Source: Amoeboradix gromovi X-113
Taxonomy: Eukaryota > Fungi > Sanchytriomycota
Length of the DNA stretch: 13,915 nt
Assembly: GCA_018985225.1 (NCBI GenBank)
Contig: JADGIF010000221.1
Span: 1 to 13,915 of the forward strand
Direction: 5' to 3'
Shown: positions 1-13,915 of the stretch, piece by piece
How the letters are laid out: each line of letters opens with the position of its first letter
How positions within the stretch are numbered: the first letter of the stretch is position 1
Translations under genes and position numbers: made by a program
The notes under the pieces: generated by a model
What the model was told of the DNA's origin: nothing
The model's database searches: none
What the model saw: the letters and a program-made list of their open reading frames with translations, nothing else

Positions 1-69
1 CATAAAATTAATAAAGCTGAAATAATGTTCCAAGTTGTTACAGAAAGTTAGTCCAGTTTTTATATTTGA

Positions 70-76
70 TGTCCCA
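70..76 (+). promoter_or_regulatory. TGTCCCA motif 32 nt upstream of the FAR11 ATG
   Basis: The same heptamer lies in sense orientation upstream of BDP1 and RPF2. Confidence 0.45.
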
Positions 77-2840: not shown

Positions 2841-2874
2841 TACGAAATCTATCTCCGTTGTTTTGCTGCACTTC

Positions 2875-2881
2875 TGGGACA
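2875..2881 (-). promoter_or_regulatory. TGTCCCA motif 34 nt upstream of the BDP1 ATG
   Basis: Context GTGTCCCA...AACGGAG is shared with the RPF2 upstream region. Confidence 0.45.
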
Positions 2882-3039
2882 CAATCTATATTGATGCACT
2901 ATCATTAACATTTCGAGAGACCTAATACATACCTTTTAATCGCCTTGACGTTTAATCTCTAACACTTACTGAATGGTGTTATTCTGAAAATTATTAAATT
3001 GGAAAAAACGCAGTGTTATATTTGAATTTTTCTCAGTAA

Positions 3040-3345
3040 AAACTAGATCAGAAATGGTTTTAACTTTAAATTCCTTAATGAAATAATAGCGAAACCAAGC
3101 CAGATGCTACCTTGTTTGTGAACAGGACGACGTTGCCAACATCAAGACAGAACACCAAAATGGTTATCGGCTGAGGTATTGCAACATGTGCTCAAGTGCT
3201 AATCAGCCAAGCTGTTTTGAAAGAGATATTGCGAGTGCATTTTTCTTGTTGAGAAAGGCTTGATGGCATTTTATGGGGCTGAAAAATGTTGCCAGGAAGC
3301 CCTTGGAGTTGGGAAGATTGCTGAAATTGGATCCCATATTGCGTA
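3040..3345 (+). mobile_element. Degenerate Fanzor/TnpB C-terminal relic A (Fanzor1-like)
   Basis: Joined across frameshifts: KWFNFKFLNE(3080)...SQ / C(3105)YLVC(3117)EQDDVANIKTEHQNGYRLRYC(3180)NMC(3189)SSANQP / AVLKRD(3226)IASA / FLVEKGLMAFYG. This is the order Glu, CxxxC, RLxxCxxC, RDxxxA seen in the RuvC-II / zinc ribbon / RuvC-III region. Boundaries are approximate. Confidence 0.6.
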
Positions 3346-3473
3346 TAATCAAGATAATTGATGTTTAAGCAAAACTGGTAACTGAATAACTAACTATTTA
3401 TAACGCGCACGGCTTCTAAAATCCCGTCAAGCAATTTTGGGTTCATTAGCATAAATAAAATTAAAGAACAAAT

Positions 3474-3761
3474 TTATTTTTGGCCAATTTTATGAATATC
3501 TTCGATTACTTTAAGATCTTGCTCATCTAAATCGTCGATAAAGAAACTCAAGTTATTTTTTACTATTTCTTTATATATTGACACTCCCACCTTTGAATAA
3601 TCAAGCGTGTTTGAGTTCGCCAACTCGAATAATTTTTTCTTATTAAAATCAGAATTCATTAACTTCTTGAATTTGGTATGCATCAACTTAGAGATAAGAT
3701 GTTTACAAGAGCCAGATAAAAGCTCATTCAGCTCCAAATTTGATACTTTTTGTAGTGGCAT
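3474..3761 (-). CDS. Hypothetical protein, 95 aa from the first ATG (MPLQKVSNLELNELL...IHKIGQK)
   Basis: Open frame with globular, charged composition. It ends in AAA-TAA-AT like the bona fide genes here. No family recognised. The ORF track start (GTG 3797) is non-ATG. Confidence 0.55.
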   Translation of the reverse strand: MPLQKVSNLELNELLSGSCKHLISKLMHTKFKKLMNSDFNKKKLFELANSNTLDYSKVGVSIYKEIVKNNLSFFIDDLDEQDLKVIEDIHKIGQK

Positions 3762-3922
3762 TGGAAAGAACCAGAAACTGACCCATAATTCATCCACTTT
3801 AAAAAGTAGACTAACTTGTATTTACAAAGAGTGCGTATTTATCATCTTAAAACTAGGCTGCAAAGTTGCTCTCGTTTCTTCTCTACCAGTCACGTCTTTC
3901 GCCATTAACAACAGGCGATTAC

Positions 3923-4020
3923 TTACTTGAAAATTGTTTGGGATGCATACACATCTCCATGCACAAATAAGTCACAGGTATTGTGCGGTTAACCACATAT
4001 AAATAACTATCTCATTTCTT
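3923..4020 (-). mobile_element. Degenerate Fanzor/TnpB C-terminal relic B
   Basis: A single minus frame reads KEMR*LFIC(3997)G*PHNTC(3976)DLFVHG(3958)DVYASQTIFK*. This resembles RxFxC..C..xxRDxNASxNI, with R>G and N>Y each one nucleotide away. A hairpin TCGCC-N10-GGCGA (3899-3918) follows immediately. Confidence 0.55.
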
Positions 4021-4060
4021 TTTGTCATACCTTTTACCCCTCTAGTATACCTTTCACGAC

Positions 4061-4939
4061 ATGTCGCACACATCTTACGAAATCAAACCGCTCTTGCAGT
4101 CGATGTTGGAAGAGAAGGGCACAAGGGTTACTATGAAAATTGTGAAGCAGTATCTAAAAGATAGAAACGTTGAAATACCAGAGAAACTTATATTAAAGGG
4201 TTTGGTGCAAGATGCATTAGAGAATTTTGATGGGTCCAGCTCAGGATCTGAATCCCAGAGAACTATTAAAAGAAGCAGCTCTGACCCAGAACCAGTAAGT
4301 CTTCAAGAGATAAATGCTGGGCAAACCGCTACTGGTGCAACTTCTAAAGCTAGAGCTGGACAGCAGTTGGTAAAAAAAGGGGTAACTGCATCAGTGAAAA
4401 ATAACACCGGCACCTCTGCAGTTGAATCTAAGAGGGTTGAGAAAATTAAGAATTTGCCAAAATCGGTCAAAGCTCCTAGTACACTTTACCGCTACTTTAA
4501 GGCCGCGACTATTACAATTCCGTACAAGGGGCTGAAATCTATGTCTTTAAAGGAGCAATATTGCCATTTAGTTGACCTTTTGACAAACAATTTTATAAGG
4601 TGTAAAATAGAGTTACCAATAGAAAACAAGACTACTTCAAAGTATTATAAATGCAGCGACAGAAAGTGGACAATTGATCTGTGCAAACAAGTTGCAGAAG
4701 AGCTAGAATTAAAGAGAGAAATGGAGGAATTAAGAATTGATGGTAGGGGATTTTCAGGAGAACCTATCTTTGGCGGCAGAGCTTCCAATGGGAGTAAAAT
4801 AAAAGACGAGGATGTTTTTTCGCAAGAATCTGAATTTTCAAGTTTGGAGAGTGATAAAATTAATACTGTCAATAAACGTTCGATATCATCGAGTGATTCA
4901 GATAAAAGCTCTCGTGTAAAGAAGACCAAGATGGAGTAA
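4061..4939 (+). CDS. HIRIP3-like histone chaperone with N-terminal DEK-C-like domain, 292 aa
   Basis: N-terminal EIKPLLQSML...VTMKIVKQYL...ILKGLVQDAL fits DEK-C. After a low-complexity linker, LYRYFKAA...YKGL...EQYCHLVDLL...TIDLCKQVAEELELKREMEEL resembles the conserved HIRIP3 C-terminal region. The tail is Ser/acidic/basic. Confidence 0.55.
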   Translation: MSHTSYEIKPLLQSMLEEKGTRVTMKIVKQYLKDRNVEIPEKLILKGLVQDALENFDGSSSGSESQRTIKRSSSDPEPVSLQEINAGQTATGATSKARAGQQLVKKGVTASVKNNTGTSAVESKRVEKIKNLPKSVKAPSTLYRYFKAATITIPYKGLKSMSLKEQYCHLVDLLTNNFIRCKIELPIENKTTSKYYKCSDRKWTIDLCKQVAEELELKREMEELRIDGRGFSGEPIFGGRASNGSKIKDEDVFSQESEFSSLESDKINTVNKRSISSSDSDKSSRVKKTKME

Positions 4940-4959
4940 ATTTGTTTTTCGTCAAGATT

Positions 4960-5130
4960 TGTCCACTACCGTAAATCTAATTTCCTGGATTGGCTACCAT
5001 ATATACAAAAACATTTACCAATCAGACTTATACTACGTATGGAACGTTGGAAAAAGCAAACTAGAGACTGTAAATATGCAAATTGTCATCTACAGCTAGA
5101 TAGAGGTTATATTGCATCGAAGAACTTAAA
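4960..5130 (+). mobile_element. Degenerate Fanzor/TnpB C-terminal relic C (Fanzor2/IS607-TnpB-like)
   Basis: VHYR(4964-4972) / FPGLATIYTK(5008)TFTNQTY(5029)TTY(5038)GTLEKAN*RL / KY(5075)ANC(5084)HLQLDRG(5105)YIASKNL. Single-base reversions give HYR...TExFTSQTCTTCGTL...RLxKCANCHLQLDRDYNASKNL, a near-textbook TnpB/Fanzor C-terminus. Confidence 0.75.
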
Positions 5131-5249
5131 CTTTAAACCCATGCATAATTGTCCTCTGACTTATTCAACTTCTTTTCGGAAAGTTTTGATATTTTAGGTA
5201 AATAGCACTTTTTATTAGGAGTATTCAAGAGACGTCGGCCATTTGTTTT

Positions 5250-6320
5250 ATGCTTGGTTGGAAGGATATTGTGAACAACTCGTCTATTACAGAGGATAAA
5301 AGATCAAGCTTTATATGCAAATATTGTGAATTTAAAGCTCCATACCATAAAGAAATTGTCATTCCACATTGTGCAACTTGCGTGAAATCCCCAAAAGAAA
5401 TGCGATCATCATTTTGCGATGAAATTGACGAGGTTTGCCCTGGAATTCTAGAGAAATACAATAACAATTTATTGAATACCAAGAGATTAAATCATAAGTG
5501 GGAGAACATTGTTACTAGCCATGTCATAGTATCAAACAACTTATTTACATGTTTGCTCTGCGAAGTTACTGATGTGTATACTAAAAACTCTGTGATTCTG
5601 CATTTTTCAAACTGCTCATCAGAAAAAACCCAGATTTTAGAGCAAATTAACAATGATCTAATAGAATTTGGATCTGAAAAACTGTTAAATATCAGTTGTG
5701 GTCTTCAAGAACTAAAAACATACAGCTGGAAGTCAATTTGCTTAAAGTATGGCATATTTTCGGAATCGAATTTCATCTGTATGATGTGCATACCCGGTAA
5801 AGTTCAGAATGTGCCAACTCCAAATAAATCTGGAGTGGTTCGGCATTTGTTAAGCTGCTCTGGAATGTCTCCATTTCTTGATGATTTTATGATACTTATG
5901 GAAGATTATGGCGATGGAGCCTCACAGTATTTGAAATATATAAGCCCATCAAAAAATGACCCTGGAAGAAAGAATATAAAATATCATAAGAACCTAATTG
6001 GTGCAAAACCTGTACCAAACGCATACAAAAAGACTCTAGAATTGGGTAGACTTGGAGAGTCTGCAGCTATTTCTATGGATAAACCTGTTTACAAAGCATA
6101 CAATGAAAACTGGGTACAATTGGGTATACACTACGGAGTGTTCTACTTGGAAAAATGCAGGTTTCTTTGCGGCAAGTGCAGCAAGTACATATACCATGAC
6201 AGAAAAATTGTGTTAAGACATTTATGCATATGTATAACCGACGAGCAAGAACATAAAAAGCTGATCAGAAAAATAAAACAATTTTGCCCAAAATTAGTCA
6301 CCAAATTTGATCTAGAATAA
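5250..6320 (+). CDS. Protein with four tandem BED-like CCHC zinc fingers, 356 aa
   Basis: Four units of W-x16-18-C-x2-C-x13-18-H-x3-C, each with FxC before the first Cys, at aa 4-44, 84-122, 160-203 and 288-328. Confidence 0.7.
   Translation: MLGWKDIVNNSSITEDKRSSFICKYCEFKAPYHKEIVIPHCATCVKSPKEMRSSFCDEIDEVCPGILEKYNNNLLNTKRLNHKWENIVTSHVIVSNNLFTCLLCEVTDVYTKNSVILHFSNCSSEKTQILEQINNDLIEFGSEKLLNISCGLQELKTYSWKSICLKYGIFSESNFICMMCIPGKVQNVPTPNKSGVVRHLLSCSGMSPFLDDFMILMEDYGDGASQYLKYISPSKNDPGRKNIKYHKNLIGAKPVPNAYKKTLELGRLGESAAISMDKPVYKAYNENWVQLGIHYGVFYLEKCRFLCGKCSKYIYHDRKIVLRHLCICITDEQEHKKLIRKIKQFCPKLVTKFDLE
5259..6233 (+). repeat. Four protein-level zinc-finger repeats (5259-5381, 5499-5615, 5727-5858, 6111-6233)
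   Basis: FICKYC..IVIPHCATC; FTCLLC..SVILHFSNC; FICMMC..GVVRHLLSC; FLCGKC..IVLRHLCIC. Confidence 0.8.
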
Positions 6321-6393
6321 CTTTTTTTAATAAATTGGGTCCTCTATTTGGCATAAATTAAAATTCTTCAAGTGAAACGTTTTCACAATAGAC

Positions 6394-7647
6394 ATGTCAA
6401 AAATTAAACTTGGATTCATTGGATGGGGAGAAATGTCTAAAATGTACTACAGGCATCTGGAAAATGTAGAGTATCTTGTGAATGATCTGGCGCATGTTCT
6501 CCCGAATATTATTAGTGCGTATCCAGACGTCAAAGTTTATGAAAATCCTATTCATGTAGCAAGAGAAGCAGACTATTTGATATTTAGTGTAGACACCAAA
6601 TCACTAGAGCCTGTTGTTAAGCTGGTTGGGCCTAGCATTAAAATGAATGCTATTGTTGGAGGTACGACTTCCATTAAGCAAATGGAGATTGAATTATTTG
6701 AGAAATACGTGCCAAGTGATGTGGCAATTATTACATTCCATTCCATGCATGGGCCATTGGTCGACCCTACTGGCATGCCGCTTGTCTTTATCCCTTTTAG
6801 GTGTACTTCTATACAGAAGACAATTGTATTAAAGCTCTTAGCACCATTAAAATCCAAACTAGTAGAGATGGAGACTGGAAGTGAGCATGATAGAATAACA
6901 GCAGATACACAAGCCGTAACTCATGTCAGCTTCATGGCCATGGGATTAGCTTGGAAGAACCAGGCTCTCTACCCGTGGGAAACGGATTTGTATGTTGGTG
7001 GGATCGAAAATGTCAAAATTGGATTTATGTGCAGAATATTCAACAGTGCATGGCATGTCTATGCCGGGTTAGCTATAAGTAATACCAATGCCCACTTTCA
7101 AGTCAGTCAATATTCAAAAAGTGTTCAAAGCCTATTCCGGTTAATGATAGAGGAAAATGAAGTAGAATTTAGGAGTCGCATATACAAAGCCAAAGAATTT
7201 GTATTTAAGAACAGAGGCTCTGAATTGCTGCTTAGCGATGCTGTATTGCAAAAGCACTCACTTGGTGGTCCAACTACTCCAAAACTATCTAACTCGCATT
7301 TATCATTGTTGGCTGTGGTAGACAGCTGGTATGCTCTAGGAGTTAGCCCATATGATCATTTAATATGTGAAACTCCTCCATTTAGATTGTGGTTGGGGAT
7401 TGTCGAATATTTGTTTTGCAATGACACACTGCTAGAACTGTCAATCCAAACTGCATTGTTTAACAAAAGCATTAGATCTGATGATCTTGCGTTCTGCGCA
7501 GCAGCTCAAACATGGGTACAATTAATATGCACTAAATCTTATGAATCATACAAAACGCAATTTGAAGAAATACAGCTGTTCTTTAAAGACAAATTGAAAG
7601 CTGGGTTTGACATGTCAAGCAAAATAATAACAAAGTTGAAAAAATAA
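6394..7647 (+). CDS. TYR1: Prephenate dehydrogenase, fungal type, 417 aa
   Basis: Rossmann GFIGWGEM, HSMHGP, HDRITADTQAVTH, YPWE..YVGGIENVK, NSHLSLLAVVDSW and PYDHLICETPPFRLWLG are characteristic of fungal Tyr1. Confidence 0.95.
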   Translation: MSKIKLGFIGWGEMSKMYYRHLENVEYLVNDLAHVLPNIISAYPDVKVYENPIHVAREADYLIFSVDTKSLEPVVKLVGPSIKMNAIVGGTTSIKQMEIELFEKYVPSDVAIITFHSMHGPLVDPTGMPLVFIPFRCTSIQKTIVLKLLAPLKSKLVEMETGSEHDRITADTQAVTHVSFMAMGLAWKNQALYPWETDLYVGGIENVKIGFMCRIFNSAWHVYAGLAISNTNAHFQVSQYSKSVQSLFRLMIEENEVEFRSRIYKAKEFVFKNRGSELLLSDAVLQKHSLGGPTTPKLSNSHLSLLAVVDSWYALGVSPYDHLICETPPFRLWLGIVEYLFCNDTLLELSIQTALFNKSIRSDDLAFCAAAQTWVQLICTKSYESYKTQFEEIQLFFKDKLKAGFDMSSKIITKLKK

Positions 7648-7656
7648 ATTTATTTT
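7641..7656. terminator. Bidirectional poly(A) signal AAAATAAATTTATTTT containing the TYR1 and RPF2 stop codons
   Basis: Perfect 16-bp palindrome. The two TAA stops are 2 nt apart and each lies inside an AATAAA. Confidence 0.7.
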
Positions 7657-8543
7657 AATCCTTTTAATTTACGAGGCTGCAGATCCGCCAAATCCTGTTG
7701 CTCAACGTATACACGAGCAACCATATCACCCATTTCAGTAGTAGATACATTCTTTTGCTTCTTTGCTTCTTTTGGCAGTTTTACTGATTGCTTCCATACA
7801 TCTTGCTGAGGGAATTGAACCCTACGAAGTTCGTAATCAATTCTAGGTCCGATTTCCACCAATTCAACCTTTGGAAGAGATAACTCTGACTTTTTCATTA
7901 GCACGCTGTAGCAGCGCATAAAGACTTTACCATTAGTGATTGAGTTATCCTTAGAGGTAGATGTACGTGTGGTAGCGGAATCCAGAGTAAAAGTGATCAT
8001 CCACTTATTGCCATCCAATGCAATTTTATCAACAGTTGGATCACCTCTAAAGAAGTCTGAAAAATAATTTTGAAGGTTTTTGACCTCTAAGTTACTCTCC
8101 CAGTCGCCTACAAATGACAAAAATGGACGACTCCCAAAGTCTGGCAACAATGTCGCATCCTTCACGATATCAGCACTCTTCTTGAAATTAGTAACACCTA
8201 ACTCATACATGTCTAATATCTGGTAATTATACAATCTTATAAAACAAAATTGATTTGGTCTTTTCTTAGAGTGAGAGGCAAGTACTAGTAGACTGGCATC
8301 ACTTTTTTGAGAGATAAATTCAACAGAAGCAGAATCTTCAAATGGTCTGATGTTATTGTTTTTGACGAATTTAATTCCCCAAGGAACCTTCATGTTGAAC
8401 AGCTCCGCCATACAATTTATGAGAATTTGTGATGTTTTAGATGATTTCATAAATACAACTTGCTTTCCGTTTTCTATCCTTTTGGATTCCTTTTCTTGCA
8501 ATGCTTTCTTACCTTTTCGGGTTTTCGCTTTCTTAGTATCCAT
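7650..8543 (-). CDS. RPF2: Ribosome biogenesis factor Rpf2 (Brix domain), about 297 aa
   Basis: KKAKTRKGKKALQEKESKRIEN, KNNNIRPFED, SHSKKRPN, ILDMYELG, YFSDFFRG, PKVELVEIGPRIDYELRR and KKQKNV...GDMVARVYVEQQDLADLQPRKLKGLK. The first ATG (8543) matches the family N-terminus; the GTG at 8621 is unlikely. Confidence 0.95.
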   Translation of the reverse strand: MDTKKAKTRKGKKALQEKESKRIENGKQVVFMKSSKTSQILINCMAELFNMKVPWGIKFVKNNNIRPFEDSASVEFISQKSDASLLVLASHSKKRPNQFCFIRLYNYQILDMYELGVTNFKKSADIVKDATLLPDFGSRPFLSFVGDWESNLEVKNLQNYFSDFFRGDPTVDKIALDGNKWMITFTLDSATTRTSTSKDNSITNGKVFMRCYSVLMKKSELSLPKVELVEIGPRIDYELRRVQFPQQDVWKQSVKLPKEAKKQKNVSTTEMGDMVARVYVEQQDLADLQPRKLKGLK

Positions 8544-8564
8544 GTATCCTCCGTTTACAAAATT

Positions 8565-8571
8565 TGGGACA
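8565..8571 (-). promoter_or_regulatory. TGTCCCA motif 21 nt upstream of the RPF2 ATG
   Basis: Minus strand reads GTGTCCCAAATTTTGTAAACGGAGGATAC-ATG. Confidence 0.45.
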
Positions 8572-8789
8572 CTTTGGGAAAACGGCCCCAAGTATAAATC
8601 TAAAGATATTCCTTGCGACACTATCCAATTGTAAGAGCCTATTTCAGCCCTTTGCTACCAACTTGGGCATTTATGCATAATCAAAGATATCAACGACTTT
8701 TTTTACCGCAGCATTCTTGTCCTGACCAAACAGTGTTGCTAAAACACCAAAAATCGTTGGCCAGCTCTCTAGCAGGTGCTGCTAGATGC

Positions 8790-8975
8790 TTTCTGATTAG
8801 ATTCTTAGAGCTGCCTATCAGTAAATGACTCTATCTCTTTTTTCTCACTTATCATTGAAGCACAACTTCGAAACTCTTGTACTTCCTTATTTGCCATCCA
8901 TTCATGATGATTCACAGATACAACAAAATTTAAGTGATAAGAACTATGGCAATGTATGGTATATATACTATTTAC
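8790..8975 (-). mobile_element. Possible highly degenerate Fanzor/TnpB C-terminal relic D
   Basis: A minus frame reads SLKFC(8925)CICESS*MDGK*GSTRVSKLC(8862)FNDK*(TGA 8847, one base from Cys)EKRDRVI. After frameshifts it continues (D)IGSSKNLIRKHL, and NVIVN lies upstream. CxxC...CxNxxC...DxxSSKNL fits, but more edits are needed than for the other relics. Confidence 0.38.
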
Positions 8976-9078
8976 TATCACATTGTTTAAGTTAAATTTC
9001 CGATTTCAATTAACTCTTAAAGTCTACAGAGTGTACTTCAGGGTCACAATTTAGCCTATTTTGCAAATCGAGAGTCAT

Positions 9079-9408
9079 TTATTTGAACAGCTTCAACGCT
9101 TTTAAGTAGTCAGGTCTATCATTTGGATTAATAGGAATCACCGCCATTGCTACAGCGATGTTTTCGGGTTGTTCTATCCATTCAACAAATTTGATTTTAT
9201 CGCTCTCTAAACTCATTTTTAATTTTTGGAAATCTTTGTCATTTGCACCTAGAACTACTTTTCTCATAGCATATCCTTGATCCAGGTATTCTCTCATTTC
9301 CTCATGATATTTGTGAACTAATAAGCTAACAGCGTGCGCTGCCTGTGCTGCCTGTGGACCAGCCTTCCATTTCAGATCACTTCTCAAAACTATGTAGAGA
9401 ATGCTCAT
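9079..9408 (-). CDS. PTRHD1: Peptidyl-tRNA hydrolase 2-like protein, 109 aa
   Basis: YIVLRSDLKW..G...AQAAHA, MRKVVL and WIEQPENI..A.A..P are PTRHD1 motifs. The first ATG is at 9408; the ORF track used TTG 9429. Confidence 0.9.
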   Translation of the reverse strand: MSILYIVLRSDLKWKAGPQAAQAAHAVSLLVHKYHEEMREYLDQGYAMRKVVLGANDKDFQKLKMSLESDKIKFVEWIEQPENIAVAMAVIPINPNDRPDYLKALKLFK

Positions 9409-9431
9409 GTTTTGGAAAAATTTATACAAAT

Positions 9432-9659
9432 TTATTTAACATATTCGTCACATAACTCATCTAGTTTAACATTTATAATGTTGCTCATCTTCTGCAGAAC
9501 CAGTCTGTATGCCTGCTCTGGATCTATTATATCCTCACCAATTATTTCTTCTATGTTCTGATCCAACTGAACTTCTTTAACAAACCTTCCAAATACGCTC
9601 CTCCCTATCTTTTCTGTTCGTTTATCATGAAAATCCATTTTCCGTTTCAAAAATGTCAT
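9432..9659 (-). CDS. Hypothetical small protein, 75 aa (68 aa from ATG 9638)
   Basis: Fills the space between two genes exactly, has a helical/acidic composition and ends in AAA-TAA-AT. Its ATG overlaps the upstream TGA (ATGA). Confidence 0.55.
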   Translation of the reverse strand: MTFLKRKMDFHDKRTEKIGRSVFGRFVKEVQLDQNIEEIIGEDIIDPEQAYRLVLQKMSNIINVKLDELCDEYVK

Positions 9660-10795
9660 CTCAATAGTTTAGATAACTCCTTTTGATGAAATTGAAGTTG
9701 ATCCAGAATACCTTGAACATTATCTACCTCTATGGATGCTAATTCTCTTTTAGTATCAAACCACAAATCCTTCAATTTGTTAGTGTCTTCACTGTTTGGG
9801 GTGTATTCAAAAGGACTATAATGCGTAGTAGATTTTATGTATTTAGGTGTGCTTTTGACAGCTGAAAACTCTTCGTCCTCTGGATTTTTTGCTATTTCTT
9901 GTAATACAATTTGATTGCTTTTCAAGGTTTCTCCCAATTTATCAATCATACTTTTTTGTTGTTCAATAATAGAGACAAACTTTGAAGGCTCTTCAGGAAG
10001 AACCGACGATGTGTCCTGCTTTTGATGGGTCTCGGATAACTTATCTCTTAGCCTTCTTATCATAGATTGAGAATTCTCCAACTGAACAAGCAGTGATTTA
10101 TTCTTTTCTTTTTCGGCTTGTAAAAGATCATAAGATCCATTTGCTTCCAGAACATTCATTGATTTTTTATTTTGCGTGTCATTTAGCCTTTCTTTTAGAT
10201 CATTATTTTCATTATTTGCGTTTTTATATTTTGCAACCATCAGCTGATATTCGTAATGCAATTTACCATACTGTACGGCCAACTTCTCGTACTCTTCACC
10301 TATATCATTATAATCGTCCACGCATAAGTTGTAATTCACTGTCAATTTATCCAGGGCGTCTTGACAAGTTCTTAATTTAGAATAGGAATTATCCAATTGT
10401 ATTTGAGTATCTAACAACTGCTGGTTCAATTTCAGTGTTGAGTCATTGGCTTGAAAATTTACTTGATGCTTAAATTCTGATTGCCGGTACCTTTTTAATT
10501 CATCAAGCTCAATTTCTTGTTTATCCAACAAGTTTTGATATTCATCCAATTTCAAGCTCAACTCTTCTACAGAGTAGGCCTCCTTCTCAGTTTGTAATTG
10601 TGCATTGTGTAAGTCGGGTATAGTTTGTATTTGCTCATTCTTGAATTGGACATTTGTTCCAGTTTTCACAGCTTTATGTACTTTTACATTTTCATTTAAA
10701 CCTCTTTTTATGAATGGCTTGCTCATGTTTTTACGATCAATAGCATCTTTAAGCTGGTTGTATTCCGATGAAAATTCTTCAAACAGTTTATTCAT
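9656..10795 (-). CDS. Long coiled-coil protein, about 379 aa, function unknown
   Basis: Heptad-rich E/Q/K/L segments over roughly aa 65-300. The first ATG is at 10795; the ORF track used TTG 10804. Confidence 0.75.
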   Translation of the reverse strand: MNKLFEEFSSEYNQLKDAIDRKNMSKPFIKRGLNENVKVHKAVKTGTNVQFKNEQIQTIPDLHNAQLQTEKEAYSVEELSLKLDEYQNLLDKQEIELDELKRYRQSEFKHQVNFQANDSTLKLNQQLLDTQIQLDNSYSKLRTCQDALDKLTVNYNLCVDDYNDIGEEYEKLAVQYGKLHYEYQLMVAKYKNANNENNDLKERLNDTQNKKSMNVLEANGSYDLLQAEKEKNKSLLVQLENSQSMIRRLRDKLSETHQKQDTSSVLPEEPSKFVSIIEQQKSMIDKLGETLKSNQIVLQEIAKNPEDEEFSAVKSTPKYIKSTTHYSPFEYTPNSEDTNKLKDLWFDTKRELASIEVDNVQGILDQLQFHQKELSKLLR

Positions 10796-10846
10796 TAAAT
10801 TCAAATTGTTTCAAAACAACTAATTAAAAATCAATTTATTTATTCT

Positions 10847-13462
10847 TCAGCTGTGCAATAATATGTACGCATACCGCACTTTAATTGCAGTCGTTCTTAC
10901 TATTCTCTTCTGGTCATCCAACATCGGCCTTAGAGCATTAATTACCAAATCCTTGAATCTTAAAGGATTGTGAATTGATCCGAGAGTTTGTAAGCAATTC
11001 AATGCCAAAAGTTTGACCTGCAGTTCATTACTTTGTATGCATTTTAACAGCTTTTCTATGATGTTGTTTAATGTGTTCACATCAATATCGTTTGGCAATG
11101 CCTTTGCCAAGCTGGCAAGAGCCTTTAACTGCAATTCCTGGACTAGTAATGCATCTATTAGAATAGGTAACAATGTATCTATCTCCATTAACACAATACT
11201 TTCGCTCATATTATTGATAAATCCGAATATTGCGCTCAAGTAGTTATTTTTTTTTTCATCTTGCAGCGACCTATACTGGAATAATTCCTCTGATACCTGA
11301 TAAAACATACGTTGAACTGCGAAACTCTTTATCTTGCAAAAGTTTAAGTTACTCAATGTATCATCATAATTGAACACTATTTCAAACAACTTACTAGCCA
11401 TTTTACTGTTTGATCCATTTAGTAGCGCCGCCAATACCTGGAGCAATGACTTGGATGTCGTATGGCATTTGGAAATAGCTGCCTTTGTAATCCATGCATA
11501 TATTAGACCATTTTGCTTAAATTCCTCGGTATTTAAAGTATTCAATCTAGTTGAAAACGATTTGAAGTCTAATGAATCAATAAACCTAGTAAGAATGTTA
11601 TTTGGGAGTTTGTTAAGCATGTTTGCGACCACTTTCGAGAAGCATTCGTAAAATATCGGATGAGTAGTAGCTTTTACAAAATGTCGTGTAATAGCATCCA
11701 AGTCGTCATCAAAATCATACTGCCGTAGTCCACACATAGCAGAGCAGTATACAAGTGTGATATTGCGACACTCTATCATTGTAATACTGTTTTTGTCATT
11801 ATGGATATTTGCTATTTCACGAACATATTTCATTAATTTTAGTTGACCATTAATCGACAAGCAGCAAGTTAGCAACAGAACCATTTTCGAAAGTATTGCA
11901 TCGCACTGTGAATAATGTATTTTCTCATGAAATGCGTCAATCAACAAATACATTATTTCAAGCAGTCTATCATCAATAATCCTTCTTGGTAACATATTGT
12001 CCTTTAATATGATGACAATGAGGTCCATGATGTTCATTGCATCATCAGATGTCGTGGTAGCTAGAAGTTGATTCAGTATGTTATGTAAGACAAAATCTAC
12101 ACATTTGGATTCAGAGAGCGACAAAATAGCTTTTATAGCGTAGTCCAGTTTCGATGGCAGCAAGTGGCATATGTAGTCACACATCATACCCGGTGCGATG
12201 CATTCCTTAGTATATACATCTGCTAGTTCTCTAATACCGGTTATTATGCATTCTCGTACTAGTTGCGATGTGTCATGAATTGCTTTCGTGAATTTGGTTA
12301 AAATTTGTGCCAAAGAAGAGTCCGTGAAGCAGCCCTGTATTAATAGTATGCGCCTTAGGTTAGAAAAGGCAGACACTCTTAACGGCGCAAACTCAGATAC
12401 ATACCCATCTTCCAAAATGACCAGAAACTTTTCATTAAATTCCAATAGATCCGCAGCAACAAATCCTTCGCATTCCTGGATTCCCTTTAACACTTCTTCA
12501 ACCCTGTCTAAAACAGCGCTTTTAAACACAAGAACATCGCTGGAATGATACATTGAGCAGAAAACTAACGCTGTGTTTGTAATTATTTTAGAGCAGTTGC
12601 TGGGACAAGAGCAACAACAAGAAAGAAGTTGAGACGCCAACCTAGCATTTCTGGAATCCGGTGGAGTCATATTCTCAACAGCCTTTGTAATTACAACTTC
12701 TAGTAACGGTGGGAAGTTGTCGACAAGTTTAGACATACATGGAATGGCATCAGGTCTGCATCGTACAAATATATCCTCAAATAAGATGGATTGCAATTTA
12801 TCCAAGTGTGGTATGGACTGAGCCTTGTCCAAAGAAGAATTTAACAACGAAAGAGATTGCTTTGGTTCCGCTTCTATTTTATCCATTATTAATTCAATTG
12901 TTAGTGGTAAAAAATGTGGTGAGGACAATATTTCTTGAAGGAGTGACTTCAGCAGCTTATCCGTTGTGCGATCTGCATTACTTGTAAAAGTTATTGGAAA
13001 ATAGCAACTCGTAACTTCATACAGGCTATCTCTAATTTTAGAAATATCAATCATATGAATTAACTTTAAAGTGGAAGCAAAGATAATGCACAAGTTGCGC
13101 GGATCTTTTTCACCATCAATGGATTGTGTGTAAAGCTCAATAAAAGTTGGAGATGGTGAACAACTTCTAATAAACTGTTCAAACAATAAAAAAATGTTTT
13201 TTCGACTGTTGTATGGGTTTGATTGAACATTAATAGTCTTGTTCAATTCTTGAATAATCTTTTTTAGCAGTTCGGGAGTGAGTTTGCTTTTGTGCAAAAC
13301 TAAGTAATTCAGTATTGTATCAACGCTAAGTGTGTCCTCAATTCTACCAATAAGGAAATCAAGAATGTGGACCACTTGTGATTCTTCTGTTGTGAATTCA
13401 ATCAGCTCTTCTATAGCACGTTGTCTTTCATAAGGATCAGTTGATTTCAACAACTCTGACAT
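10847..13462 (-). CDS. MMS19: MMS19/MET18 cytosolic Fe-S assembly HEAT-repeat protein, 871 aa
   Basis: DGEKDPRNL, CYFPITF, QRMF and C-terminal LDDQKRIVRTTAIKVR are MMS19 signatures. Confidence 0.92.
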   Translation of the reverse strand: MSELLKSTDPYERQRAIEELIEFTTEESQVVHILDFLIGRIEDTLSVDTILNYLVLHKSKLTPELLKKIIQELNKTINVQSNPYNSRKNIFLLFEQFIRSCSPSPTFIELYTQSIDGEKDPRNLCIIFASTLKLIHMIDISKIRDSLYEVTSCYFPITFTSNADRTTDKLLKSLLQEILSSPHFLPLTIELIMDKIEAEPKQSLSLLNSSLDKAQSIPHLDKLQSILFEDIFVRCRPDAIPCMSKLVDNFPPLLEVVITKAVENMTPPDSRNARLASQLLSCCCSCPSNCSKIITNTALVFCSMYHSSDVLVFKSAVLDRVEEVLKGIQECEGFVAADLLEFNEKFLVILEDGYVSEFAPLRVSAFSNLRRILLIQGCFTDSSLAQILTKFTKAIHDTSQLVRECIITGIRELADVYTKECIAPGMMCDYICHLLPSKLDYAIKAILSLSESKCVDFVLHNILNQLLATTTSDDAMNIMDLIVIILKDNMLPRRIIDDRLLEIMYLLIDAFHEKIHYSQCDAILSKMVLLLTCCLSINGQLKLMKYVREIANIHNDKNSITMIECRNITLVYCSAMCGLRQYDFDDDLDAITRHFVKATTHPIFYECFSKVVANMLNKLPNNILTRFIDSLDFKSFSTRLNTLNTEEFKQNGLIYAWITKAAISKCHTTSKSLLQVLAALLNGSNSKMASKLFEIVFNYDDTLSNLNFCKIKSFAVQRMFYQVSEELFQYRSLQDEKKNNYLSAIFGFINNMSESIVLMEIDTLLPILIDALLVQELQLKALASLAKALPNDIDVNTLNNIIEKLLKCIQSNELQVKLLALNCLQTLGSIHNPLRFKDLVINALRPMLDDQKRIVRTTAIKVRYAYILLHS

Positions 13463-13497
13463 TCTCTAAGAAAAGTAGACTGGAGGGGCAGAGGGGG

Positions 13498-13915
13498 ATG
13501 TCAAAAAGAAAGAAAACCTGAGATACTAGATGCCCAAAACCATCGAAAATTTCAGTGCTCAAGCTCTATGAAGCCATTGCACTAGCACTTAAATCGTGTC
13601 TCTTTTTGCACAAGTGCATACTGAACAATAAGAAATTTAATTAAAACCGTTGGCGTGCAAGTGAAAAAGACAAAAAATAAACAACTCTCAATATCATAGG
13701 ACTTCTTTTTATTGGTACTGGTGTTTTGTCACCATTCAACACTTTGCAGATCTACGACTTGTAGCAAATTTTATCGCATCAGAATGTGCGAAATGAAAAG
13801 AACTCAAAGTTCATTAGAGTTGCGACCATTCAATAAAAATATGATGTGTCCAACACTTGTAGTAGCTGCAAGCGTTATGAAAGGATTCAATCGTTGCGTC
13901 AATTGTCAGCAATGC
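13498..13915 (+). mobile_element. Degenerate Fanzor/TnpB relic E (Fanzor1-like), running off the window end
   Basis: One frame with 5 stops reads ...NNKKFN*NRW(13651)RASEK...GLLFIG(13714)TGVL...KFIRVATIQ*(TAA 13834, one base from GAA Glu)KYDVSNTC(13858)SSC(13867)KRYE. After a frameshift: GFNRC(13895)VNC(13904)QQC. The RD motif would fall just outside the window. Confidence 0.62.

Follow-up and report, generated by a model that had tools for sequence, protein, structure and literature searches.

Nuclease-less derivatives of Fanzor transposons are known from the zoosporic fungus Spizellomyces punctatus, where 134 ghost and 42 Fz loci of Spu-1 have been described (Saito et al. 2023, PMC10432273); the ghosts are copies of ~500 nt bounded by terminal inverted repeats (TIRs), they keep the right-end omegaRNA region and carry a conserved motif (CA) 5' of the left TIR, and omegaRNA-based retention has been suggested for them (PMC10432273). 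IS607-type Fanzor2 elements encode a serine-recombinase TnpA overlapping a Fanzor2 with a DPG motif and a shifted catalytic Glu and have neither TIRs nor target-site duplications (TSDs) (PMC3627910; 10.1101/2023.08.09.552727), and a single letter separates their target-adjacent motif (TAM) from the element end (10.1101/2023.08.09.552727). Minimal IS200/IS605 elements of bacteria that resemble palindrome-associated transposable elements (PATEs) are protein-less, retain both ends and the omegaRNA region, rely on TnpA and TnpB supplied in trans, and have been proposed to persist via cutting of the empty donor site (Meers et al., PMC10055086), whereas the Sola2-associated Fanzor1 elements DFa and PPa have short TIRs and 4-bp AT-rich duplications (ATAT, AAAT, ATTT; PMC3627910). 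Here, we characterize five enlarged intergenic gaps in a complete 13.9-kb contig (13,915 nt, referred to as the window) of the sanchytrid fungus Amoeboradix gromovi, whose 10.5-Mbp genome was sequenced after whole-genome amplification (PMC8371127) and is assembled as 10.55 Mb in 1,319 contigs. These gaps very probably hold selfish, nonautonomous, miniature Fanzor-transposon derivatives, similar to ghosts or to miniature inverted-repeat transposable elements (MITEs), that were amplified in waves and are now decaying neutrally.

The elements fit this known kind, represented here by both Fanzor classes, at unusual density, and are not a gene control system. With the Spu-1 ghosts they share a zoosporic fungal host, the TIR-bounded, nuclease-less structure of ~500 nt, the retained right-end region of the putative omegaRNA, and conserved sequence just outside the left TIR on its 5' side (C-ANNT in family D below); they differ in their number (~1,200 recognisable copies in four or more families within 10.5 Mb), in retaining 70 to 145 codons of the open reading frame (ORF), in having full-length relatives in giant-virus-like contigs, and in being known from DNA alone. 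The IS607-type families have flank/end triplets of CAG/GAG and CCG/GCG, comparable to GGG/CGG in ISXfa1, but internally deleted minis prevail by about 20:1 and reside in a fungal nuclear genome. The likeness to PATEs extends to the TnpA and TnpB supply in trans that we propose for the minis, although PATEs are bacterial, move by a Y1/HUH mechanism, and number tens of copies rather than the hundreds found here. Short TIRs and a 4-bp AT-rich duplication recall DFa and PPa, with the putative Sola2 assignment made here from termini and TSD only.

The relics represent at least four nonautonomous families (A to D) of two-ended units with internal deletions, which bears out one of the options raised in a preliminary description of this DNA. 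Each unit, 395 to 625 nt in length (A, ~625; B, 395; C, 421; D, ~500), consists of a left end, an internal deletion, the last 70 to 145 Fanzor codons, and a right end, and alignments of copies with their flanks show sharp common ends and unrelated surroundings. Families A and C are of the IS607/Fanzor2 type, lack TIRs and TSDs, and have a core dinucleotide common to left flank and right end: the left flank is CAG in family A (C in 24 of 27 copies, A in 19 of 27, and G in 23 of 27) and CCG in family C (11 to 12 of 12), and the right ends are GAG and GCG (9 of 9), respectively. Families B and D have G-rich TIRs at their boundaries and ANNT flanks; matching TIRs surround full-length giant-virus Fanzor1-type genes, to which these families are related. 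In family D, a C stands at -5 of the left flank in all 12 copies and the mirrored G in only 2 of 8 right flanks, an asymmetry that fits TAM-dependent retention. One clean 4-bp duplication was found (ATTT, positions 89 to 92 and 4657 to 4660 of locus L021), around a B-type 4.56-kb element that splits a D end.

Genome-wide copy numbers, which are rough and come from first-look candidate matches, comprise 571 non-coding left ends of family A, 411 candidates for D, 108 for B, 93 for C, and 28 for TnpA, together with 560 candidates for the PF07282 zinc ribbon, of which all 150 that were scored exceed the cut-off. All families together amount to ~1,200 recognisable copies and ~6% of the assembly (arithmetic on these rough counts), so the massive invasion by Fanzor elements that the preliminary description envisaged is upheld, as is its observation that ORF remnants are limited to the C terminus. 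Its proposal that the omegaRNA-bearing end was preferentially retained is not: left ends are as abundant as zinc ribbons (571 versus 560), and the bias toward the ORF 3' end therefore stems from amplified internally deleted, two-ended units and not from erosion sparing one element end. Copies match the majority sequence of their family at 77 to 95% identity in A, 83 to 91% in B, 89 to 99% in C, and 91 to 98% in D, indicating amplification waves of different age.

The coordinates and sizes of the five enlarged gaps in the window had been given correctly. The remaining spacers range from an overlap to 73 nt; empty spacers in the genome sample are mostly 2 to 90 nt and mostly under 100 nt. We compared each gap with DNA profiles of the families, built from genome copies outside the window, against 200 dinucleotide shuffles, and with frameshift-aware protein-profile alignments against 300 shuffles per gap (22 tests in all). 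Fanzor C termini had been reported in every gap; homology was confirmed in three of the five (relics at 3081 to 3335, 5001 to 5221, and 13647 to the end), each of which passes both tests (Table 1). In the gaps at 3762 to 4060 (Fanzor1-type, 28 of 300 shuffles; Fanzor2, 36 of 300) and 8544 to 9078 (Fanzor1-type, 128 of 300; Fanzor2, 2 of 300, which fails over 22 tests), no significant protein-level Fanzor signal was obtained, which leaves unproven the motifs recognised by eye in them; HMMER likewise gave no significant protein signal in these two gaps or in 13463 to 13646. BLAST searches of the genome with gaps 3762 to 4060, 4940 to 5249, and 8544 to 9078 returned self matches only, so that profile methods were needed, and, as the relics come from different families, a repeat search within the window found none.

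Table 1. Transposon relics and related features in the window, with the scores that identify them
Feature	Position	Strand	Evidence and remarks
Family-D left end (young; TIR, Fanzor1-type)	1-75	-	~32-nt TIR plus sub-terminal DNA; contig start cuts element
Family-B relic (TIR, Fanzor1-type)	3081-3335	+	DNA profile 217 bits, 0/200 shuffles; gap 2841-3473
Very old repeat with D-type terminal motif	3786-3935	-	Motif 3794-3835: 6.6 bits, 0/200 shuffles
Old family-A-type relic (IS607/Fanzor2)	5001-5221	+	DNA 37 bits, 0/200; protein 37, 0/300; gap 4940-5249
Very old dispersed repeat (family E), B-like terminus	8566-9063	-	End motif 3.0 bits, 1/200 shuffles; gap 8544-9078
Intergenic DNA, MMS19 ATG to family-C copy	13463-13646		No significant DNA or protein match
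Young family-C element (IS607/Fanzor2-type)	13647-13915	+	DNA 321 bits; protein 32, 0/300 shuffles; contig end cuts element

The family-B relic keeps a zinc-ribbon/RuvC-III remnant at 3090 to 3260 and a right end at 3335 that is followed by ATAT and points at the stop of the 3474-3761 gene; its gap reaches a frameshift-aware protein score of 61 (0 of 300 shuffles) and is matched by residues 567 to 628 of an external 642-aa protein (P0006; E = 2e-7). Identity to the 108 family-B candidates is 74 to 87%, with the left end unsupported (374 of 1,000) and the first ~130 nt of the family unrecognisable. The old family-A-type relic, at ~70% identity to its family (profile match 5009 to 5228; E = 7e-12), comprises a zinc ribbon, a RuvC-III remnant, and a right end at 5221 that 28 nt separate from the downstream ATG (5250), and the alignment shows that ~49 nt of its scaffold region are deleted. 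The young family-C element starts with its CCG target motif (13647 to 13649), followed by the left end, which faces MMS19, and a zinc-ribbon remnant; it shares 86 to 97% identity and one sharp boundary with 93 candidates, and its sister copies match PF07282 (E = 1.2e-6). Judging by terminal motifs, the two remaining repeats are probable relics of Fanzor1-type elements. The one at 3786 to 3935, which ~24 nt separate from a start codon (ATG, 3761), has weak look-alikes in contigs C413 and C519 (E = 0.12), and the other, whose B-like end is followed after 22 nt by the start codon of RPF2 (8543), matches C611 (E = 4.6e-6), where the copy has two more relatives, and C364 (E = 6e-4). Outside the region covered by the preliminary description, the contig also begins with a family-D end (nhmmer, 65 bits, E = 1e-20, 0 of 200 shuffles) that is 81 to 97% identical to about 12 other copies and lies 33 nt from the ATG at 109.

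Single copies decay neutrally. Across 35 family-A copies, private mutations occur at 0.017 per site in the left end, 0.015 in the ORF remnant, and 0.019 in the last 172 nt (p = 0.24), with an omega of about 1.3, whereas for variants common to four or more copies omega is 0.45 (p = 4e-4), and the last 172 nt contain fewer of them (p = 5e-4). In a three-hairpin fold derived from one copy, pairing is kept by 8 of 11 shared variants and by 9 of 45 private ones (~30% expected), which argues that the structure was selected in transposing lineages or in coding parents and not at single loci. Element right ends have a weak consensus fold and no match in an Rfam search. An omegaRNA-like fold at right ends is supported in young copies of A, C, and D, which, like two full-length loci, fold better than shuffles (z = -1.4 to -3.8), but not at B ends (z = 0.2 and -1.0). 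It has been lost from the four testable window relics (z = +0.13 at 3081 to 3335, +0.97 at 3786 to 3935, +0.35 at 5001 to 5221, and +0.89 at 8566 to 9063). No two of the 32 putative guides sampled are alike, each simply being the DNA that flanks its copy. Second sites of 16-nt guides with 2 mismatches allowed occur at a level judged to be chance but uncalibrated. Taken together, the fold kept by shared variants and the TAM-like left flanks suggest that omegaRNA-guided retention probably helped the families spread. As a separate observation, L068 (1232 to 1979) contains a young family-A copy inside an older one, and its putative guide accordingly matches many family-A copies, with 18 sites in the sample; the majority triplet preceding that site is TAG, not CAG.

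Candidate parents are present elsewhere in the genome, and the absence of RuvC-I and N-terminal portions noted earlier is correct for the window only, since RuvC-I, N termini, and TnpA exist at other loci. Contig C542 (locus L021) carries an intact locus in which an IS607 TnpA (serine recombinase PF00239, E = 6.6e-16, L021 2770 to 3282) overlaps a 671-aa Fanzor2 with PF12323, PF07282, DPG, the shifted Glu, a zinc ribbon, and the RuvC-III Asp, whose best PDB match is the mimivirus TnpB-like L79 (E = 1.6e-13). In the DNA run, a single 3.4-kb contig contains the locus, its depth resembles that of its neighbours, and mapping this single run to it gave no empty-site or circle joint. TnpA and Fanzor2 are nested there in the 4.56-kb element with B-type TIRs (L021 89 to 4660), which also holds two orphan ORFs, of 303 and 103 aa, that lack a Pfam match, and part of a D end. 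A second, possibly intact TnpA and Fanzor2 locus lies in C459 (10198 to 11916; 603-aa open frame, TnpA without stops), and C385, C565, and C46 hold longer, broken family-A-type copies with RuvC-I, accompanied by TnpA fragments in C46 and C385; a search of viral contigs yielded no parent of family A. A profile of B and D remnants recovered full-length 585- to 642-aa proteins, most of them in gene-dense giant-virus-like contigs, with DPG, WGxG, zinc-ribbon, and RD motifs; they fall within Nucleocytoviricota clusters with DUF8286/PF07282 and resemble TnpB folds. We label these relatives Fanzor1-type on the basis of motifs and architecture; solved Fanzor1 has no sequence match to them, and the AlphaFold model of one (P0009) has a pLDDT of 44. 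Two full-length 642-aa genes (L076 151 to 2221 and L078 4884 to 6948) have D-like TIRs on both sides and no transposase. The 3' end of the L076 locus is the family-D TIR almost letter for letter, and the neighbours of the L078 gene are giant-virus-like (TFIIB, dUTPase, DUF5901).

In the mechanism that we favour, the minis would be moved by transposases acting in trans, the IS607 serine recombinase for A and C and a DDE enzyme, probably Sola2-like, for B and D. The 3' part would be retained because it encodes a putative omegaRNA, with which a full-length Fanzor supplied in trans could cut the empty site (TAM plus the copy's own right flank), whereupon repair would restore the copy; the guide would be that right flank, and its sole perfect target the empty site.

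The preliminary description placed every gap beside a start codon and proposed promoter-proximal targeting. The adjacency holds in the window, where zero convergent gaps among five is unremarkable, but not in a wider sample of 182 kb of element-centred loci (gene calls approximate and made in this analysis): 10 of the 32 filled spacers are convergent and have no start codon, 15 are tandem, and 7 are divergent, which approximates the 1:2:1 ratio of a chance distribution. Right ends face a start in 25 cases and a stop in 22, and left ends in 18 and 21 (Fisher p = 0.67); within 100 nt these counts are 11 and 11 for right ends and 10 and 8 for left ends, leaving no bias toward start codons. Element positions are random relative to gene starts, and promoter-proximal targeting is not supported. 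Surviving insertions are confined to intergenic DNA, with many young copies in or beside older ones, and since native spacers are mostly 2 to 90 nt, a surviving insertion always lies near a gene end, making closeness to start codons a by-product. The persistence of an intact Fanzor2, the folding of young ends, and the three window relics ending 22 to 28 nt before an ATG would suit a guide reservoir domesticated by the host, in which relics are kept to aim Fanzor, for cutting or binding, at gene starts; given the positional balance, individual scaffolds under no purifying selection, window relics without the fold (one with part of its scaffold deleted), and guides that are each the copy's own flank, this idea is largely refuted and scarcely credible. 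It is also improbable that element ends provide the promoters or 5' untranslated regions of adjoining genes. Some do end 2 to 50 nt from an ATG, where native promoter DNA may have been displaced, but start- and stop-facing ends, like left and right ends, are equally common, old relics are not conserved, and CCC before the ATG, found in 3 of 13 element-proximal and 10 of 47 other genes, is matched in frequency by GGG, so that a CCC signal there is not supported.

A simpler account, which we consider possible though unlikely, holds that these are plain MITEs that inherited the ORF 3' remnant and the fold as passengers from a few master deletion derivatives, the omegaRNA being irrelevant to spread. 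The neutral decay of copies agrees with it, left parts are likewise 180 to 270 nt long, and shared-variant signals can stem from coding parents; it sits less well with retention of the 3' scaffold region in four independent families of two transposition systems, the TAM-like asymmetric left flank of family D, and the one-letter difference between left flank and right end in A and C. A stronger scenario is rather doubtful: omegaRNAs of young minis, in their hundreds, would still be loaded by the intact Fanzor2 and by the product of a Fanzor1-type gene missing from the assembly, RNA-guided retention would have powered a spread of MITEs across the genome that now accounts for much of the intergenic DNA of this reduced fungus, and some ends would have acquired a secondary role as promoters. 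Several observations weigh against selfish minis retained with the help of their omegaRNA. The intact Fanzor2, with only ~66% DNA identity to family A, did not directly give rise to that family. In the fragmented assembly, no intact Fanzor1-type ORF was found (longest open frame, 436 aa), and no DDE transposase was seen, no Sola2-directed profile search having been made. TSDs, which in Sola2 elements are 4-bp AWWT, are exact in only 2 of 6 full D copies, and family B has ANNT on both sides, mostly inexact. Finally, selection on the shared variants that preserve the structure may have acted in coding parents instead of minis.

The genes of the window are eukaryotic, uninterrupted, and closely packed and include those for a DUF3402 protein, a Myb/Bdp1-like protein, prephenate dehydrogenase, Brix/Rpf2, PTH2, and MMS19. 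Three ORFs (5250 to 6320, 4061 to 4939, and 9656 to 10795) are orphans with no Pfam match; the first has many Cys/His motifs of zinc-finger-like appearance. Elsewhere in the sample, a family-A subfamily (L007 604 to 1063 and L006 834 to 1309) keeps the left 260 nt and the right 170 nt around a middle of unrelated DNA. Several host ORFs in L001, L006, L008, and L035 to L044 have their stop codon 4 to 34 nt inside the left end of a family-A or -C element, indicating that some insertions replaced the native stop.

Our findings give no indication of a new regulatory system. By candidate counts, about one recognisable copy per 9 kb, this is probably among the densest loads of Fanzor-derived elements, and counting old relics raises the density in the window to one copy per 2 to 4 kb. 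EukProt lists at least 49 family-A remnants and one family-B remnant as proteins (P0137 to P0185 and P0001), so some annotated A. gromovi proteins are transposon remnants that inflate its proteome. The genome adds a new intact Fanzor2, and giant viruses are a likely source of the TIR families B and D. The flanks of these families (CAG, CCG, C-ANNT) further provide natural material from which TAMs can be read, and the families allow one to ask whether omegaRNA retention gives nonautonomous elements a transmission advantage.

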